This document shows positions 28,557 through 39,597 of a stretch of 64,000 nucleotides of DNA, one piece after another. Every line of letters starts with the position of its first letter. Position 1 is the stretch's first letter. Made by a program: the position numbers and the translations under genes. Below the pieces are notes generated by a model that did not search any database, was not told where the DNA came from, and saw only the letters and a program-made list of their open reading frames with translations. This stretch comes from Dimorphilus gyrociliatus (lineage: Eukaryota; Animalia; Annelida), in contig CAJFCJ010000007.1 in NCBI GenBank assembly GCA_904063045.1, positions 4,037,404 through 4,101,403 of the forward strand. The letters run 5' to 3'.

Positions 28557-31500
28557 ATGCTGAGTGGAATACCCAAACGAAAGGGAAAGAAAAAAAAGAA
28601 AACTGATAAACCAGTTATTATTGATTCGGATTCGTCTATTCAACAAAATACTGACGTAAAGAAAGTTTATATTCCAACTGCCTCAGATTCAAAACCACCA
28701 CCGTCACCTTTCACTGAGCGTAGTTCTAAACCAATCACGAAAAATATCTCCAAATACATCAAGGTAAGCAGCTTGAGTAAGAGATCTGAATCGGTCGCCA
28801 GTATTGAAAAAGGAAACGCTCCTGATGACAGAATAAAATTCTTCAAAACCTTGTCCATGTTAATCGACATGGGAAATCCAAATCGGTCTCATAATCCACC
28901 GGAGCCTGAACCAAGGCGAACTACGAGCAGACCAACGTCTCGATCTCACAGTCCCGATAGGGAGAGCATTACGATATCTTCATTAAGTGATCTAGTTTGG
29001 CTGAGTATTCAGGCTTGGAAGTATATTGGAAGCGATCCGTTTATTGTACGAAAACTTGATGAAGCATATATTTTGGTGGAGAAGGAAAGAAAAGAGAAAG
29101 TTGCCAAGATTTCACACGAGATCCTTAGTTACAGATTTGATTATGGTTTGACTCGGAGTTCCCGTCTACAGACCGAAACTACTCCTGATTTTTTTTTACC
29201 CTGTCAATCCATATTCAAGCGTTGTGAAGACCTCTCAGAACAAGTTTTAATGATAAAGCAAGCAATGAAAGATATAGGAATTATTTTAAACGATCTTAAC
29301 ATTGTTGAGGAGCTGTATTATTCAGAGAAGAACTTTTTGGAACAAAATTTAAAATTAGAAGAGGATAAAGAGTTTCAAAACAGAGTTAAAACCTTATGCT
29401 TGTGGACAAATTTGGTTTCTCAGCTAGCTTATGAACTTCATATGTATGCCCATAAATTGTTTACTGATAATATACCTAATTTAAAATGGCCATTTTTAAA
29501 TTATATGCCTAAGAATTTCGTTGAGCATTCCTCCTGTCCTTTAAAGCTTAATGCTCACCTTGAGAAAGTCGAAAGTAAGAATAACGTCGTAGAATTCACT
29601 ATAGGCGATGAAGAGCAAGCTGAACGAAGTAATTGCCGACTAATACATTCGCAATCAATTCTCAACCTGGAAAATACAGCTCATGTTCCTAGTAGTTCAA
29701 CATATGTATTTAGAACCTACGTCGAAAGAACCTTACGAAAGAGTGGTTTGAAAAAGGTTGAAGCTCTAGCTAAAAAGAATGTCCTCAATATGGAATCTGT
29801 TCTAACTAAACTTCGACTGATTCTACTACCGATTGAAAAAGCTGAAAAAGAAATTAAGCAAATTGAGAAAGAGATCGATGAAGAGAATAGAGAAATCATT
29901 CAAAGACAATCTGGCAAACGAAACAAGGATGAAAGGAACGACTTCAACGTTCAAATTAATAGGCAAAAAGCTGAAAAATTAAAAACTAGAAGAGAACTAG
30001 TGGAATTTGGTGAACACTCGAAAGAATGGAGAAAAATGAATTTGCCATCATTAAAGGAGTTTTATAAATTTTGTATAAGAATCCCTCTTGACGTTATTCA
30101 CGAATGTTTGCGCTATCGCCTTGAACAATCAAGAGAACAATTCAATCAGAATTCATACGACAAGGCAACTACGTCCCTATTGTCTATAAATCAATTAATG
30201 AACGAATGTGGAGAGATTCTTACCGCGTCAGTGACAATGAAAAAGTATTACTTAACTATGGCCTGTGATATAGTTGATGATATTGATATCGAAGAATTAG
30301 ACTCAGATATGGAAAATATGTTGGGTGAACATATTAAATACATGAGGCATTACGTATATAAAATTGAAAACGAACCAAATTTATCCAAATACCTTAGTAG
30401 GTTAGAGAATGAATGGGCCTTTATGAGGACAGTATGCTCTTGCGTTCGTCAGGGTGAGGCTAAAGCTGGAAATGGTTATTGTGACATGGTCAGTCATCTC
30501 CTGAACATTATCAAGATGTTCTTTGCTAAGCGATGCGATGATATAACTGGTAATCTACAGAATTTATTAGAACAATCGAACGAAGGCGATTCAGAGTGTC
30601 CTAATATGTATGATGTAATTATCAAACTATGTAGAGAGATAAAAGATGTATTTGATGAAACTAAAGAAAGAACAGCCAGGGTAATGGGACTTGCCAAAAT
30701 GCTTAGAAATGATCTCGAAATTGCGGCCCAGTATAAAATTGTTTGTACTGCTTCTCACCTTCTGGAAAAGCTTAGAGAAACGAATCATGTTAAAATTAAT
30801 TTGAGGAGTCTGTCAAGTGACTTTATTGTTCTTATTCCGGAATCAATGAAAACTGATAAAAAATCAATCATCACTTTATTAAGGGCAACTAGTAGTCTCG
30901 GCGTTGCTGATTCACGACAGAATAAGGGATATCTTATTATGGTTCACTGTCATACTGCAAGTGACGGAGCAAAAGTATGTCCGATCTGGAAGGGTGAAAC
31001 AATGGGAGTTGAAGCAGATGTTGAAACTGAAATTTGTTGGTCACACCTGAATATCAAAGGTAGTTTAGAGTTATTTTATAAGGGATCAAATAATTAATGT
31101 TGATTATTTTTTCTATTTTCTATTGTACAAAACAGGCTTGCTTATCCTGGCACACTCTCGACAGCTACCATCTGTTCGCAGAGAAGTAGAAAAGTCACTA
31201 GGATCAAAGTGTATTGAGTTAGTTTTAGAGCAGGTTGCTTGCCATAAAGCTGTTAATGAATCATTAGTTGATTTAAAAAAGGCCGGGCTTGAATTTAGAA
31301 CTGCATTCGTTGAATATCTAAAAGAGATTCAATCATCTTTCTTCAGTGTACAAAATGTTCCATCTTATATTGGTTTAGAGATTATTATTGATACGCTGAA
31401 AAAGACTTATAATTTTGGATTTGATTTCCATACTGATTTGTATAGGTTGATGTCTGGAAAAGAAAGGGCAGCCTTAAGTGATGCTTTAATCGATTTTGCT

Positions 31501-32823
31501 CTTGAATGGATGCATTTGGCAATTGAAAAGTGTGAAAAAGGTAGAGGCGTTAGACCTCGTTGGGCTCATAAATTCTTTGAGTATCTTAGATTTGTTGCTT
31601 CTCCCGATATTACATTGCATTTAAAAGAAGAAAAATTTGCAGAATTTAAGAAAAGATTCAACCGTTGTACGTGCCATTTAATTGGGGAGAAACCTAAGGA
31701 TTCACCCAGTCCCGTACCAAGTAAAGTAGTGATTCCCTTCAATCCTAGTTTGAGTGTTCCTGATAATAGAAGACGATCTGACACTAGCGATTCTATCATT
31801 TCACCTGTTAGTTTTGTGTCTGAAGGAGGATCATTTCCCCAACACATGTACGAATCTCCTATAAGCACTCCTGAAGAGTCATGCATAAAAAGATCTAATG
31901 CTATTCTTGAATTAGAGCGGAAGAGGGATGAAGAATTGAAAAAAAAAAAGATCATAGGGAAAGTAATAGGTGTGTGTCAGAGAGTTCGTTATGATTTATC
32001 TTTAAGAGTGGTTACATTCGATTGGCAAAGAGGTGTTAAAATAGGCGAAGGTAGATTTGGCAAAGTTTATACAGCTGTAAATATGAGAACTGGAGAAATG
32101 ATGGCTATGAAAGAAATTCCAATCAAACCAAACGACCATCAATTTGTTAAAGGCATAGCTGATGAATTGAAAAACTTTGAAGGACTCGATCACTTTGGTC
32201 TCATTAAATACTACGGAGTTGAGGTTCATCACGACCAAATGTTAATATTTATGGAGTATTGTCAAGGCGGAACTCTGCACGAAGCAGCAAAGACAGGACT
32301 CGATGAAGCTGCTATTCGTTTTTACACAAATAAGATTGTTCATGCAGTCGCCTATTTGCACGAGAACAATATTGTTCATAGGGATATTAAAGGAGATAAT
32401 ATATTTTTGACCAATAAGGGCCTTAAACTAGGAGATTTCGGCTCAGCTGTTAAACTGCGTGAACACAAGACACGAGCAGAAGAACGAAACCTTGTAAGAG
32501 GAACAACTCTGCCGTTCCAGCCTCCAGAAGTTGTAAAGAACGCATCTATAGAGCAACATCTCAGATTTGCTGCAGACGTGTGGAGCATTGGATGTGTAGT
32601 TATAGAGATGGTAACGGGTAAATTACCATGGTCAGAGCTAAATATAGAACAAGAATATCAAATGATCTATCACATTGCTACTGTTAATCAAATGCCTAAA
32701 GTACCAGATAATATTTGTAACGATTTAAATAAATTCTTAGAAAGGTGCTTTGAGATTGATCCAGAAAGAAGAGCGACAGCTGAACAGCTACTCGACGAAA
32801 CCTTTATTAAGGTTCAAATGTGA
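28557..32823 (+). CDS. MAP3K4: MAP kinase kinase kinase 4 (MEKK4/Ssk2-like); two long exons, true N-terminus may lie further upstream
   Basis: Long helical N-terminal region (DLVWLSIQAW, KMNLPSLKEFY) and a C-terminal kinase domain: WQRGVKIGEGRFGKVY, AMKEI, YYGVEVH, HRDIKGDN, DFG, ADVWSIGCVVIEM. One intron joins IK G|LLILAH. The frame stays open about 58 codons upstream to an acceptor at 28384. Confidence 0.92.
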
Positions 32824-33990
32824 GACTAGGAAGGAGAGAAACAGATAAGCCAGAAAAAAAGAAAAGAGAAGAGAAAGATGAAGTATGTAGAAGAACAGCA
32901 AGGAGGAGAAATAAGGAGAAATAAATAGAAAATTAGAGAATGCGCATTTTGATTTTAATTTGACACTATAAAAGTGATTTTAGTTGAAAAAGAAAAAAAC
33001 GTAATAACGGGACTTATGTATTTATTCAATGCTCAATATGCAAATTTTTTAAAACTGAATACTGCATTTTATTTCATATTCCTTAAATACAAATTATATT
33101 CCATTCCAAATTAATTACATAACAACATTGATCAAAAATGTGAAATATGGATTGAATAAAAAAATAACAAACTCTAATTTTTTCTTGCTTCAAAAAATTG
33201 ATAAACCATCCTTAGATATCAATCATCTTCGTCTTGTCTCATTCACATAGCAAAAGTCCTATATGCATATTTGAGATATATAAATTATAATTAACCTATT
33301 AATCTCATATGCTTTCAAATGTTGTGTATATATCAGAAGCTAACAAAGAGTAATTTTATCCAACCTTCATATTTATTCTTCTACACGTTCCTGTCTCTGT
33401 TTTGAGACCTCTTTTTTTCTTTAGATAGCAAAAGCTATTAATAGATAAAGCTCTATGCGAGTCTTTATTTTGTTTCCAATAAGAACAATGATCAAGGACT
33501 TCCTAAACATTTTTTTTGGTGATAGCTAAATTGTACCAAATGAATGAGAAATAGACAATGCACTAAAATTAATATTCTAGTTGGCATCTTAGTTTTAAAT
33601 AGTCATTTTATAAGAACGTATTATTCTCTAATAGAAATAAATATTTTAAAAATACCACCTTTTAAGGACATTCCCCTTTTTGCGTATAATATAGTATAGT
33701 TTGTATACGAAAACGAGGCAGTTTGGTCACTTCCGGTTGTTAACATTAGATAGGTACTACCAATTTTAGAATTTTACACATCTGTTATTTTGATTTTTAA
33801 ATTGATATCCAATTCGGAAAGAGAGGAATCGATATATACCGAAACTAAGTACGTAATTATCGTTGAAATTCTTTAAGATAAATTATAGTTTGTGATTAGA
33901 CAGGGTGCGGTACAAAATCGTAAAACAATAAAAATCTAACATCATATTCACGTATTGGAAAGATGGCCATCGCCTTCTAAAAGAAGAAAA

Positions 33991-34176
33991 ATGAAAAACG
34001 GAAAAGTAGAGAGAGAAGTTATATCCACGTTATCCAGCTATATACCCAAATTCTCAGATATCTTCGACGAAGAAACATTTTACATTTTTGCTGCTTGTTT
34101 GACAATTACATCCCTAGTAGCTGCATTCATAGCATCAAGATACATTCGTATCAAAGATGCAGGCCATGTAGATTAA
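33991..34176 (+). CDS. 61-aa single-pass membrane microprotein
   Basis: MKNGKVEREVISTLSSYIPKFSDIFDEETFYIFAACLTITSLVAAFIASRYIRIKDAGHVD: one C-terminal TM helix preceded by an FDEETFY motif that I recall from small invertebrate proteins (unverified). The ORF track starts at an upstream TTG. Confidence 0.65.
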   Translation: MKNGKVEREVISTLSSYIPKFSDIFDEETFYIFAACLTITSLVAAFIASRYIRIKDAGHVD

Positions 34177-34190
34177 GAGATAATCTTCAA

Positions 34191-35453
34191 ATGGCAGAGA
34201 GGGCGTGTGGAGCCTGCCTTAGCGCTTGCGTTCGTTGCGCAACTTACACGCATGATCGAATTATGGCGTGGAAATGGAGTAATGATTCCACGTCTTTATC
34301 TGATACAGTCATAGGATATAAATCAAATTCATCGGCTGTGACAGAATCACTTCATATTGCTATTGAAAAGCGTTCTATTATAGATATCCGGCGGATTTTA
34401 GACAATATAGAAGATTGTCGGCTGGAGAGAAACTACGCTGAAGAAACCCCCGTTCAAGTAGCCTGCAAATTTGGATATGAGGAAGGTTTGGTGGAACTTC
34501 TCGATGGTGGCTGTGCCACCGATGTTGTGAATTCGAATGGATCTCCTATGCATTACGTTTTAGATGCCCTTAGATCCCGTCAAATTGATGACTTCAAAGC
34601 GGTTCGCATGTTGAAATTACTTTATCATTATGGTTGTAACGTAGATTCCCTGGACTCCAAGTCTAGAACAGCTTTATTTCTGGCTTGTGAGTTAGGAAGT
34701 AGAGTTTGTTCAAAAGCCCTTATCGAAATGGGGTGTGGATTAAACGTTTCCGATAGAACAAATGAGTTCACCCCATTATATATGTGCTCTATAAAAGCAG
34801 ATTACGAAGGGGTTAAAATTCTCTTAGACCACGGTGCTGTCGTAGATAAAAAGGATAGCGCTGGTAGAACGCCATTGATGGCTACTTTAATAACGATTGG
34901 TAAAAGTCAACAAGATTTTGCGATATCTAACGAGAAATTTCTTACGGATTTTCGAAAGCGGATAAGTGTGTTTGAGTATCTCTTACAGGCTGGAACTAAT
35001 GTCGACGAAACGGATAGACTTAATAGAACGCCTTTGTCAATAGCAATTGGTTTGGTTCACGTAGAAGTCATAAGAAAAGCCTTCTCATCTCATGTCACGT
35101 CCTTTTTACAAACTGGTGGAGGCATCATGCCTCTTAATGTAGAGGCAGCTAACCTTTTGGATAAATGTTTTAAAAGTGGTATAGGTAAAGAAGAACCATT
35201 GTTATCAAGTTTAGTACGGTCTCTAAAAATCTACGGAGCTCAATTGAAAGACGATCTCCCTCATCTAGAATTTGCACCTTCTTGGTTATTCAATTTATAC
35301 GAATTTTGTTCTCAGAATCGCCAAATTAAAAAGCCGTTCATTTTAATGTTCTTCTGCAGACAAATTATCAGAAAAACAATGGCACTACATGGTAATTTGG
35401 GACTCGAAACACAGCTACCTTTACCGGAAAGGTTAATAGCTTATGTTCAATAG
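34191..35453 (+). CDS. Ankyrin repeat and SOCS box protein (ASB-like), intronless, 420 aa
   Basis: About six ankyrin repeats (TPVQVAC, TALFLAC, TPLYMC, TPLMA, TPLSIA) and a C-terminal SOCS box PFILMFFCRQIIRKTM...LPLPERLIAYV. Confidence 0.85.
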   Translation: MAERACGACLSACVRCATYTHDRIMAWKWSNDSTSLSDTVIGYKSNSSAVTESLHIAIEKRSIIDIRRILDNIEDCRLERNYAEETPVQVACKFGYEEGLVELLDGGCATDVVNSNGSPMHYVLDALRSRQIDDFKAVRMLKLLYHYGCNVDSLDSKSRTALFLACELGSRVCSKALIEMGCGLNVSDRTNEFTPLYMCSIKADYEGVKILLDHGAVVDKKDSAGRTPLMATLITIGKSQQDFAISNEKFLTDFRKRISVFEYLLQAGTNVDETDRLNRTPLSIAIGLVHVEVIRKAFSSHVTSFLQTGGGIMPLNVEAANLLDKCFKSGIGKEEPLLSSLVRSLKIYGAQLKDDLPHLEFAPSWLFNLYEFCSQNRQIKKPFILMFFCRQIIRKTMALHGNLGLETQLPLPERLIAYVQ

Positions 35454-35650
35454 TTTTTATTACTTCGTCTTTTTCACGTATCCTAAATTATCTCTATAAT
35501 TGAAATGCTACTGTTGTAAGAATAAAATTCATTCGGGCTAAATGTACAAGATCTGGCGTCTCTTTTCAATGTAAAAATTACAAAAAATATCCTAAGAACC
35601 GTCATTTTTTTTCGGTCAGTTGTATTCAGAAGAAAGCAATATTTAACCGT

Positions 35651-36369
35651 TTAGATAATGCCGATTTTGTTGGCGACATCGAGGGCATCGTAGTCAGACT
35701 TTAGCTTAACGAAGGCTTTCTTTTCTCCGTCCGGTCGGATTAAAGTGTTAACTTTCTCCACCTCGATAGAATACAATTTCTTAACAGCCATCCGAACCTT
35801 CTTCTTGTCCGATTTTTTATCGACGATAAATACAAGCGTGTTGTTATCTTCAATTTTCTTCATTGCCGATTCAGTGGTCAGCGGGAACTTAATGATAGTA
35901 AATTGATCAAGCTTGTTCGAACGAGGAGTTGATCTCTTAGGACAACGAGGTCTTCTCGTTAGGGAAAGGGTTTTTGGGCGTCTAAAATGTACGGACGTGC
36001 GAATTTTACGTTGACGCTTGGCAAACACTCCCTTAAGTTGGGCCTTTTGAGCCTTTTTAGCTTTAGCCTTTACCACGCCACCTTTCTTTTTCAAATCCTT
36101 TTTAGGGGCTGGTTTCTTGTCCTTGGACTTGACGGCCTTCGGCGGTTGTTTCTTTTCGCCGACTTTTTCTGAAAAGCGTACACGTGCAATATTATCATTG
36201 GTTTTAATGTCAATTATATACTATAAACGAGAATAATTTTACGATACATCTAAGAATTAATTTAAATACTATACACTTCCAATATAAATGATGGTGAATA
36301 CTCTATATATCAGCAAAAAAACAAGGAAAATTACTCACTGACAGCAGAAGTTGGTTTCTTCGGAGCCAT
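35651..36369 (-). CDS. RPL23A: 60S ribosomal protein L23a (uL23) with a Lys/Pro/Ala-rich N-terminal extension (2 exons)
   Basis: [58 protein letters not shown] and [14 protein letters not shown]. Exon 1 [10 protein letters not shown] ends at a gtgagt donor. Confidence 0.97.
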
Positions 36370-36374
36370 CTTGT

Positions 36375-36400
36375 AGAAGAGAACGTTTTCCGGTCACGTG
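36375..36400 (-). promoter_or_regulatory. TCT-type polypyrimidine initiator plus E-box upstream of RPL23A
   Basis: Minus strand reads CACGTGACCGGAAAACGTTCTCTTCTACAAG-ATG. TCT/5'TOP initiators are typical of ribosomal protein genes. Confidence 0.55.
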
Positions 36401-36515
36401 GGAAGTCCATAGAACTCGCAAAAAAATTTTAATATCTTATTTTGTTTTTTTAAATATTCTTGATACGCTAATCATTTTTAAAAAATTTTAGACGCTCTAT
36501 TTCATAGAATAATAT

Positions 36516-36527
36516 TGCGCATGCGCA
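36516..36527. promoter_or_regulatory. NRF1/Erect-wing-type palindrome
   Basis: Perfect 12-bp TGCGCATGCGCA in an AT-rich divergent promoter between RPL23A and the EGF/TSP1 gene. Confidence 0.6.
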
Positions 36528-36859
36528 AGAGACACGTGCCCCGACCTAGCGGGATATGTGCTTTCTCACGTTTGAAATCCATTAATACAAAATCTCTAAT
36601 CTCCAAAATAATCCTATTACTCGGAAATTTTATATTTATTTTTAAATTGTTCCATTTTAAATATTCAGGATTCAACAGCTCATGTTAAAATTTTATTCCC
36701 CATTTCAATATGAAGCTCTGGAATTTAAACAATTTAAAATAAAATTACCCTCCATTCAAAATAACGGCTCTATATTTCATTACACATTGAAACATTAAAT
36801 GTATTTAAATGTTTTAATTACGTTAAAAATCACTTTTAAATTCTAAGCAACATAAAAGA

Positions 36860-39597
36860 ATGATCCCAAAACATTTCCTTCTGTTTCAATTTCCATTGAC
36901 AATTTATTGGTATTAGATGCATATTATAATTTTATAATACAAGCTGTAGAGTTTCATTTGATTTTTAGTATCCAATATAGAACTTTAAAACAACTTAGTG
37001 ATGCTGCTGAAGAATTTAAAAGAAACAGTATGGCAAAACTAGCAGGCATACATTATGGTGTAGAAAAAGGATCCGAATTTGACTGGCAAAAGGTTAAATT
37101 TTATAAATACTTTAACACAGAAGACGCAAAAAAAGTATATAAAACGTATATATCAGAATATTACTTTTAGTGAGTTAAACACGAGATAATCTAACAAGTA
37201 ATTCTTTCAGAATAAAGTAATTTTCACTATTTTTACCAGACTACTTTTCTTTTTTTTAAAAAATACAATATAAAAACATTCCAACTGGTAAAAAGGTAAA
37301 AATTGTGATGAATTTTATATAGACATAGAAATGATAGATGGATAAAAGAATGGGAGGAAATTTTTAGAAAGAAACCTGAAAAAGTATCACCTTTTGATTT
37401 ATTTTCATGCTCATTTAATGCGTGTATTGATAAAGATGATTTATTCTCTTGTTCATGGCTATTGATTAACGAAATGTTACAAGAGGAAGAATTTGCTAGA
37501 AAATCATATAATCTGGATTTATTCAATGCATATTTGATACAATATCTTTGCCAAGATAAAAGGGATAGTGTCGATACTGCAGATTTAAATGATAGCTGTT
37601 TTGACCCTTGTAGAACTAATGAAGAGACAGGGAAAAATCAAGTAGACACTTAGTATTTTACAATCTACTGCATGTTATTCGTTTTTCATTCAATTTATTA
37701 GTGTAGTGATATTACAAATGCCGAATCTACATGTAAGAAAATCAACAAAGGCATATATACAACTGATTATCACTGTCAATGTAAAGACAATTACGATTGG
37801 AACATAGTTTTAAAGACATGTCAAGTTGTATCCCATTTTTGCTCGAGGAGCTATAATGAGGGAGGCTGTTTTCGCGAAGGATTAATTCTCGAAGGCAAAG
37901 ATTGCCTAGAGCCTAACGAAGATCCTAATGATACAAGCGAAATTATGTGTTATTGCAATGCGCAATATGGTGGCCGTTTATGTGACAGGAAGAAAAACGC
38001 CTGTGAAGAGAAAATTCGTCCAGAGTTTGTAGCAGGAAAAGTTGCTTGCGGCGACTATGAAGGTCTAATTGTGTGAGTTTGAAAAAATAATATAAGTTTT
38101 TATTTTTTATTTTCAAGGACGAGGCGAGTGTCAACTTAGGGAGTCGAGTGATATTGGCTATTTTTGCAAATGTGCCAGCAATAGGGCATCTGACGCCGGG
38201 GTTGGTTATCCAAATTGCTATCAATTGACAGATGCATGCAGTAAGAATCAAGTTCAGTGTCAAAGGGGGCAATGTACGGCATCTCCTGACGGAAGTAAAG
38301 CTTATTGTCAGTGTGATCCAGGATTTATAGGCCCCAGATGTAGTATTGCTTTACCAACTTGGCTATCCTGGAGTGAATGGGATCAATCCGAATGTACGCC
38401 TATTTGTGGCGCCGTAAGAATTAAAGTCCGAGTTCGAAAGTGTGGTTCAAGAATATATTATAAAGGGTATTTCTTAGAGTGTCAGGGTGATTCTAGACAA
38501 GAAAGAAGATGTGCAGTAAAGTATTGCCGGTAAAAAAAGGCAAAAATAAAAAAGTCTTATTTAAGTTTCTTTTCCAACAAGTTAACCTTTTCAGGGTTAA
38601 TGGAAAATGGAACGATTGGGGAGGATGGAGCAGATGCTCTCGACGTTGTGGAAATGGTGTGAAAAGAAGAAGAAGAGCTTGTTTTTATGCCACAGAATAC
38701 GATCACGATGATCTCTTTGGCGAAAATTGTCCTGGAAAAGGGACTGAGAGAGCTAGGTGCAATACATTCCGTTGCGCACCTAATCAAATTACGGAAGAAT
38801 TTTTGGAACCGCCCTATTATCCTCCAGATATTAGTGGATACCTAGACTGGTCGTCTTGGAGTAATTGTAACGTGTATGATTGCGGAAGCGGTATTAGAAT
38901 TATTTAAAGTCTATTTAATACTTATGTACTTAAAAATCTATATTTATAATAAATACCTTTAGGTCGGCGTGTGAGAATTAGAAGATGTAAATTTGGTGCT
39001 CGGCTCTGCAAAGGTGAAAACTTTGAAATTGATAATTGCTTTAAGAAGTGTCCCACTAATGAAAAATCTTATGACGAGTGGAACGAATGGTCTAGTTGTA
39101 ATAACAAGGAAATATATTGTACAAGGAACAGGCAGTGTTCATATGAATCTTGTTTCGGTAGAACTACACAAACAGCGAAATGCGTAACTAAAAAGGATGA
39201 AAGTAGTAATTACAAAAGAGTTTGTAGAGGAGAAATAATGGATCATCCAACGTGGTTGGTAGGAAAGATGATGGGTACGCACTGGCTTAAAATATTCATT
39301 GATTTTAATAAAGAGTTAAATGATTCATTCGTTTTGGATTGGGAAGATGATTTAATACAAACTGCAAGATTACTGCCAGAAAAGACAACAGCGAAGGACT
39401 TATTAAAGAATATAATTGTAATAACTTTAATAATAGTATCAACGTATACAATTTTAGCATCCAGTTTCTTTATATTATTGTTTATTTTTATAAGAAGATA
39501 CTTAAAGGACGTACTCTTTGATTTGGAAAATAAAACTGAGAATTTTACGGCTATTGACGAAGATGATGATGACGAGAACACACGTTTGTTAACTTAA
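36860..39597 (+). CDS. Type I membrane protein with several EGF-like and about four thrombospondin type-1 repeats (5' exon structure uncertain)
   Basis: EGF-like modules (CQRGQCTASPDGSKAYCQCDPGFIGPRC), TSP1 repeats (WSEWDQSECTPICG...R.RKC; WNDWGGWSRCSRRCGNGVKRRRRAC; WSSWSNC; WNEWSSC), a TM helix IIVITLIIVSTYTILASSFFILLFIFI and an acidic tail ending ENTRLLT. I could not join exons 2-3 (about 37170-37240) without a stop codon. Confidence 0.75.

Follow-up and report, generated by a model that had tools for sequence, protein, structure and literature searches.

A microprotein gene and a probable ankyrin–SOCS box gene appear to share one spliced mRNA in the annelid Dimorphilus gyrociliatus

The window analysed here is a 64,000-nucleotide (nt) stretch of the genome of the annelid Dimorphilus gyrociliatus (GenBank assembly GCA_904063045.1, contig CAJFCJ010000007.1, positions 4,037,404 to 4,101,403 of the forward strand), and all coordinates are counted from its first letter. 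Reading of the sequence together with the list of its open reading frames (ORFs) delimited a two-gene unit on the plus strand, in the region 33659..35679, in which the ORF of a small membrane protein (the microprotein) and that of an ankyrin-repeat and probable SOCS-box protein (the ASB) lie 14 nt apart. It appears likely that a common promoter drives both genes, and that they are carried on a single spliced mRNA ending at a common poly(A) signal.

The unit begins with a non-coding first exon (33659..33848, 5' end uncertain), which was defined by RNA contigs and contains no ATG. Within it lies a promoter-proximal block (33710..33750) with an ETS-type ACTTCCGG at 33729-33736, conserved in a related species represented by the contigs L001 and L003 (hereafter the relative). 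A 51-nt GT..AG intron in the 5' untranslated region (UTR) follows at 33849..33899. The next exon carries a five-codon upstream ORF (uORF, MAIAF-stop) at 33963..33980, with its ATG at 33963 and its TAA at 33978-33980, then cistron 1 (33991..34176), the 61-codon ORF of an FDEETFY-family microprotein with a single membrane pass. After an intercistronic gap of 14 nt (34177..34190; 15 nt in the relative) comes cistron 2 (34191..35453), an intronless 420-codon ankyrin and probable SOCS-box ORF, and an AATAAA poly(A) signal is found at 35521..35526, 68 nt past the ASB stop. Two hairpins are predicted at the junction, one inside the final 18 codons of the microprotein ORF (hairpin 1, 34132..34160) and one across the stop and start codons (hairpin 2, 34163..34195). 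The ETS-like site at 33729, the five-codon uORF, the 61-codon ORF and the 14-nt gap had been pointed out in a first-pass annotation made from the letters alone, and were confirmed on reading the sequence.

To obtain transcript evidence, the region 32000-37000 was compared with assembled contigs from three public runs, the metatranscriptomes X1 and X2, and X3. X2 is 100% identical to the locus, while X1 comes from a relative of approximately 95% identity. A single 1970-nt contig of X3 corresponds to 33659-33848 joined to 33900-35679, and spans the leader, the uORF, the small ORF, the gap, the entire ASB and the 3'UTR. Both ORFs are therefore found on one mature transcript, as the first-pass annotation had proposed, in a one-run assembly rather than a single molecule. 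The splice joint 33848|33900, with 51 nt removed, is present in contigs of X1, X2 and X3, showing that the earlier placement of the intron at about 33754-33903 was wrong. Low-coverage contigs of X1 and X2 start at 33751 and 33761, just 3' of the 33710-33750 block, and X1 has separate contigs on the small ORF and on the ASB, of depth 2-7, the former running to 34047 and the latter beginning at 34201. X3 is taken to be RNA-seq on account of its removed introns, the Illumina adapters at its read ends and its extreme depth on the ribosomal protein gene RPL23A, which is several hundred times that on the neighbouring genes, with no depth in intergenic DNA.

The unit appears to have a single site of 3' end formation. 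No AATAAA or ATTAAA occurs between the start of the small ORF and the start of the ASB, including the 14-nt gap, and the only poly(A) signal with a conserved position is the one after the ASB, the relative having an AATAAA 81 nt past its ASB stop. This is in line with the earlier reading that there is no room for a poly(A) site between the ORFs. A further AATAAA at 33927-33932, in exon 2 of the leader, is not kept in the relative and is read through by the RNA contig, and is therefore evidently unused. The only intron of the unit is located upstream of both ORFs. The unit thus has no exon junction past its first stop codon, a layout that has been proposed to render polycistronic mRNAs immune to nonsense-mediated decay (PMC3951408).

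The tight spacing resembles that of tunicate and nematode operons, and AG dinucleotides are present at 34176-34179, both of which speak for an operon-type precursor that is split between the cistrons by trans-splicing of a spliced leader. We regard this as extremely unlikely. The AGs at 34176-34179 are not preceded by a pyrimidine tract, no foreign 5' leader letters or loose ends at the gap are among those listed for the runs X1-X3, and the mature contig runs straight through. In addition, the D. gyrociliatus genome paper reported a canonical landscape of promoters and 5'UTRs free of spliced leaders, concluding that the species has no operons or trans-splicing (PMC7854359).

We next compared the unit with the relative, whose microprotein, one of three homologues returned by a word-based search, is 90% identical to that of the window. 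Gene order in L003 is kept, with MEKK4, the small ORF, the ASB, and RPL23A on the opposite strand. The ACTTCCGG promoter block, the five-codon uORF, the 61-codon ORF, the ASB and both AUG contexts are all retained, with a gap of 15 nt. Non-coding DNA is only 42-49% identical between the window and L003, and the conserved islands in it are the block 33710-33750 (80%), the beginning of exon 2 and the uORF (78%). L001 was also considered as transcript evidence, and was set aside as uninformative on the mRNA, being colinear with the genomic contig L003, intron included.

Both ORFs are genes selected as proteins. With synonymous divergence (dS) from the relative saturated, the small ORF gave a nonsynonymous divergence (dN) of 0.044, a dS of 1.38 and a ratio omega of 0.031, and the ASB, over the first 260 aligned codons, a dN of 0.113, a dS of 2.0 and an omega of 0.055. 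Of the 32 differences in the small ORF, 25 fall at third codon positions. The conservation check that the first-pass annotation had called for thus returned strong purifying selection on the small ORF, along with hundreds of homologues. Because regulatory uORFs, whose translation matters rather than their peptide, likewise precede a main ORF on one message, this role was weighed for the microprotein ORF and is very unlikely: the omega is 0.031, the peptide is better conserved (90%) than the ASB (81-83%), and the homologues, hundreds in number, stand alone or beside other genes in insects, copepods, flatworms and annelids. Readthrough or frameshifting to give a membrane-anchored microprotein–ASB fusion was also considered, as the two ORFs of the relative share a frame and its 15-nt spacer is free of stops. 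In the window, however, the ASB is read in frame +2 with respect to the small ORF, and hence no single recoding event would be common to both species, and the chance of such a fusion is next to nothing.

The start codons met by a scanning ribosome were then examined. The leader contains no ATG in 253 nt, where approximately five are expected (P = 0.004). The first AUG, at 33963, is that of the uORF and is in a strong context (A at -3, G at +4), followed by the microprotein AUG at 33991 (A at -3, A at +4), by two AUGs inside the small ORF that open out-of-frame mini-ORFs of four codons (34157) and one codon (34166), and by the ASB AUG at 34191, again in a strong context (A at -3, G at +4). Depletion of ATG inside the small ORF, which would be a sign of leaky scanning, was not seen, its two out-of-frame ATGs being at about chance level. 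The uORF ends 10 nt before the microprotein AUG in the window, and 13 nt before it in the relative, where it reads MAKAF-stop. It was found only in the two genomes with an ASB downstream, and no equivalently placed uORF was seen at the other loci, in a loose comparison in which the 5'UTRs are unmapped.

Synonymous change is unusually rare in the final 18 codons of the small ORF, where the proportion of synonymous differences (pS) is 0.24, compared with 0.81 in codons 1-43 and 0.66 in the ASB (binomial P ~0.002). The same two-hairpin fold is predicted for these codons and the gap in both species. In hairpin 2, GCCAU (34163-34167) pairs with AUGGC (34191-34195), covering the ASB start codon, and an inner stem of GAUUA (34171-34175) and UAAUC (34181-34185) overlaps the UAA stop. 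Folding z-scores for the junction are -2.97 in the relative and -1.42 in the window, and of the 72 aligned columns the seven that vary are all unpaired. These predictions are suggestive only of a real structure. The UGGGA motif of the calicivirus termination upstream ribosome-binding site (TURBS), which is complementary to 18S rRNA, is absent from the 140 nt upstream of the ASB start in both species, and an Rfam scan of 33000-36500 gave no match.

The low synonymous change in these 18 codons could reflect a core promoter or an RNA structure. In the former case the ASB might be expressed mainly from its own shorter mRNA, with a start site within the small ORF towards its 3' end, with the long RNA serving the microprotein only and the ASB portion acting as its 3'UTR. 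The split contigs of X1 (small ORF to 34047, ASB from 34201) are in line with such overlapping units, and contigs cannot reveal transcript starts. We consider this arrangement unlikely, although it is the strongest of the rival readings, for several reasons. The X1 contigs are low-coverage fragments (depth 2-7), the only clearly conserved non-coding block is that at 33710-33750, a start in the last 40 nt would produce a very short leader, and the conserved gap length and the hairpin that pairs with the AUG would be left unexplained.

The reading that we favour, and hold to be probable, is a genuine two-cistron gene, in which the microprotein gene provides the promoter, the intron and the first ORF, the ASB ORF follows 14 nt past its stop, the poly(A) signal after the ASB is used, and both proteins are made from one mRNA. 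Ribosomes would thus produce both proteins from a single message, with the ASB probably translated via reinitiation or leaky scanning, and the mini-uORF and the stop-start hairpin may tune its translation. In the proposed pathway, most 43S complexes would first translate the strong-context five-codon uORF, and the ribosomes that resume scanning would be too near the microprotein AUG (10-13 nt) to reinitiate efficiently there. These ribosomes would regain competence over the next 200 nt and initiate at the strong ASB AUG, while complexes leaking past the uORF AUG would yield the microprotein. A second contribution could come from termination-coupled reinitiation, in which a ribosome at the UAA would melt the hairpin and free the ASB AUG 17 nt ahead.

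Several points weigh against the two-cistron gene. The library type of X3 is absent from its record, its RNA origin being deduced from the introns, adapters and RPL23A depth described above. An assembled contig that covers two ORFs is not proof of single molecules with both, and the gap is bridged by one run only, X3. Two out-of-frame AUGs (34157 and 34166) lie between the microprotein AUG and the ASB AUG. Finally, the hairpins are without covariation, and the z-score of the window is only -1.42.

Turning to the proteins, the ASB contains several ankyrin repeats (Pfam Ank_2, E 1.1e-21; Ank, E 5e-15), as does its orthologue in the relative, P0005. The SOCS-box profile PF07525 matches residues 382-419 over nearly its full length with an E-value of 1.7e-4, scoring 22.1 bits against a cut-off of 23.5 bits, and P0005 scores 21.8 bits. 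The BC-box LxxxCxxxI and the Cul5-box LPLPxxLxxY motifs are visible by eye and conserved in the orthologue, and the nearest named set with a SOCS box in the Atlas is ASB4-like (score 0.98). The earlier description of 34191-35453 as an ankyrin-SOCS box gene therefore holds for the 420 codons and the ankyrin repeats, while the match to the SOCS box remains just under the cut-off. P0005 is the one close orthologue (81% identical), and the best matches outside the dinophilids are generic ankyrin proteins with 22-36% identity. Orthology to a numbered vertebrate ASB was sought by word-based and PDB searches and rejected, as only generic ankyrin proteins were returned beyond the one close orthologue. 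Like the vertebrate ASBs, which are substrate receptors of Cullin-5 ligases, the window protein combines ankyrin repeats with BC-box and Cul5-box motifs in a probable SOCS box at its C-terminus; unlike them, it has no clear orthology to a numbered ASB and carries an N-terminal CxxCx3CxxC cluster. This cluster, at residues 6-16 (34206-34238), is identical in the relative, and might bind metal or be lipidated, which would place the ASB at a membrane.

The microprotein has one hydrophobic segment (residues 30-48), and its structural model consists of three helices, with a membrane helix at residues 27-51 predicted with a predicted local distance difference test (pLDDT) score >90. The membrane-spanning character attributed to it from the start is thus supported. 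An alignment of 17 diverse members including the window protein identified the invariant residues P19, F21, D23, F25-D-E-E-T-F-Y31, F33 and S49. The family signature, P-x-F-x-D-x-F-D-E-E-T-F-Y-x-F directly before one transmembrane helix ending in S-R-[YF], is present in the window protein. A profile built from the 17 members matched 698 proteins, with E-values down to 1e-28, an exhaustive search of representatives gave 125 clusters at 50% identity, and a scan of JGI metagenome contigs added 44 microprotein loci. The family occurs across protostomes, in insects, copepods, flatworms and annelids. Named members, all "uncharacterized" or "hypothetical", come from bees, a sawfly, thrips, a tephritid fly, the copepods Tigriopus and Oithona, and Schistosoma, and the neighbours of the microprotein in the Atlas are unnamed arthropod clusters of 65-74 residues. 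Some members have a long K/E-rich C-terminal tail. A homologue with 66% identity, P0002, is on a 998-nt contig on which no second gene was called.

No Pfam match to the microprotein or its orthologue was found at E-values up to 1, and a PDB profile search with the microprotein at E-values up to 10 gave only a chance match to TsrE. Kinship with FXYD or KCNE proteins, to which the F..D spacing and the S-R following the helix bear a visual resemblance, was rejected, as neither PF02038 nor PF02060 was matched and the PDB profile search gave no support. The microprotein family is old and unnamed, and has no Pfam model. A profile search of public proteins lists the ASB of the window but not the 61-residue protein, and the small ORF is therefore probably unannotated.

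To investigate whether the microprotein and the ASB are linked elsewhere, 54 microprotein loci were collected, 51 of them with a homologue besides L001 and L003 from the relative and L053, a duplicate Bombus locus. No ASB was detected by tblastn in the 50 homologue loci screened, several of which include 1-6 kb of downstream sequence, and the called genes of the last locus, L054, include no ankyrin protein. Matches to the ASB protein by tblastn were confined to the two contigs of the relative. The first-pass annotation had asked whether orthologues of the small ORF also lie directly upstream of this ASB; they do so in L001 and L003, and not at the other homologue loci examined.

Different genes are found beside the microprotein at these loci. 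In the metagenomic animal loci L038 (2-703) and L041 (51-886), an MRP_L53 ORF ends 12 and 17 nt, respectively, before the microprotein ATG, with AATAAA only after the microprotein; L041 is genomic DNA that includes an intron in MRPL53. These MRPL53-microprotein pairs are a candidate for a second, different bicistron. MRPL53 is also located 2.2 kb upstream of the microprotein in L032, and in the Bombus assemblies (L052:1653-4192 and L053) it lies directly upstream in the same orientation, at a distance of 421 nt, with intervening AATAAA signals that indicate probably separate mRNAs. MRPL53 is probably the ancestral neighbour of the microprotein, and no match to it was found in the window or L003 at E-values up to 1. 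In L034 (8-1909) and L046 (333-2319), an MFS/Sugar_tr SLC22-like ORF of 570-590 residues lies ~105 nt past the microprotein stop on the same strand; the small ORF of L046 has a 1-nt frame shift inside the membrane helix. Poly(A) tails were sought on L034, L046 and L038 as proof of mRNA origin, and none were found.

Other arrangements were also seen. In Tigriopus (L054:4001-5969) and in a GC-rich metagenomic contig (L021:152-2279), the next gene after that of the microprotein encodes an Abhydro_lipase and is in the opposite orientation, a copepod-type synteny unlike the annelid and bee arrangements. In the gene models P0256 and P0265 a DDX55/SPB4-like DEAD-box helicase carries the microprotein domain as an N-terminal fusion, and these models may represent merged neighbouring genes.

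The ASB pairing is thus a dinophilid novelty, confined to two dinophilid genomes, while the microprotein is far older. The first-pass annotation had suggested the microprotein as a membrane partner or substrate of the ASB. Gene linkage lends this no support, with no ASB in the 50 loci screened by tblastn, and MRPL53 or an MFS transporter beside the microprotein at some of them; the confinement of the pairing to one lineage, together with the other neighbours elsewhere, argues against a dedicated relation of this kind, short of excluding it. Most likely, the ASB ORF would have come to occupy the former 3'UTR of the microprotein gene during genome compaction, rather than through a joint function of the two proteins. 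A more speculative and rather doubtful scenario is that the FDEETFY microprotein is habitually one cistron of a two-gene mRNA, with an early protostome linkage to MRPL53 and a change of partner in dinophilids, where the new uORF and the AUG-pairing hairpin would form a coupling switch setting the ratio of the two proteins.

The unit is flanked upstream by a MEKK4-like kinase gene on the same strand, which ends at 32823, and downstream by RPL23A on the opposite strand, from 35651. The kinase gene (28557-32823) comprises two very long open frames of 846 and 566 codons with ~25 nt between them, its orthologue in L003 contains MEKK4_N and Pkinase domains, and an X3 contig suggests a 3'UTR of ~700 nt, extending to 33527. 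The 3' ends of the ASB and RPL23A converge (35454-35700). With the AATAAA at 35521, the RPL23A stop at 35651 and the X3 contig extending to 35679, the two 3'UTRs abut or overlap. X3 contigs also reveal a 170-nt intron in RPL23A at 36169-36338 on the minus strand (CT..AC on the plus strand), and a second splice joint one base off (36169/36339) occurs too.

In kind, the locus is a bicistronic microprotein/main-ORF mRNA, already known in several animal genes, and not an operon. Known animal examples include ASDURF-ASNSD1, SNURF-SNRPN and the MIEF1 microprotein. Drosophila Sloth1/Sloth2 is a further animal bicistronic mRNA (PMC9681215). As in such capped and polyadenylated mRNAs, two non-overlapping conserved ORFs lie on one message, the small ORF first, with a short spacer and no internal processing. 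The differences are that the pair of an FDEETFY microprotein and an ASB is unreported, and that it occurs only in two dinophilid genomes, whereas the microprotein is far older. Our literature search found no pairing of an ASB with a bicistronic microprotein, the sole mention of an ASB being the human GPR75-ASB3 readthrough. What is new is this protein pair, the strength of the evolutionary evidence, the large unnamed microprotein family, and its repeated tight linkage to varied neighbours.

The proposed use of the uORF has precedents. GCN4 and ATF4 are classical cases of uORF-mediated delayed reinitiation. Another has been described for the TP53BP1 small-ORF protein (PMC10193022). The locus is similar to these in having a very short strong-context uORF just before a second start, with a further start ~200 nt on, but its middle ORF is a conserved protein gene that does not overlap the last ORF, and it is not known to depend on stress or eIF2. 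The close stop and restart, preceded within 60 nt by sequence or structure that is conserved, are reminiscent of calicivirus TURBS and of LINE-1 ORF1/ORF2; unlike TURBS, the locus lacks UGGGA in both species and has a gap of 14-15 nt without overlap. Nematode and tunicate spliced-leader operons are comparable in their tight same-strand spacing and compact genomes, and differ in that no spliced leader is reported for D. gyrociliatus and the mature contig is unprocessed.

The microprotein family is present across protostomes without a Pfam model, a name or a known function, and the small ORF of the window is one of its members that annotation has probably passed over. With its mini-uORF and predicted stop-start hairpin, the locus is a small natural model in which to study how eukaryotic ribosomes reach a second cistron. 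More broadly, the locus is an evolutionarily stable case of two unrelated protein genes on one mRNA in an animal reported to be without operons or trans-splicing, implying that genome compaction can yield bicistrons by another route.

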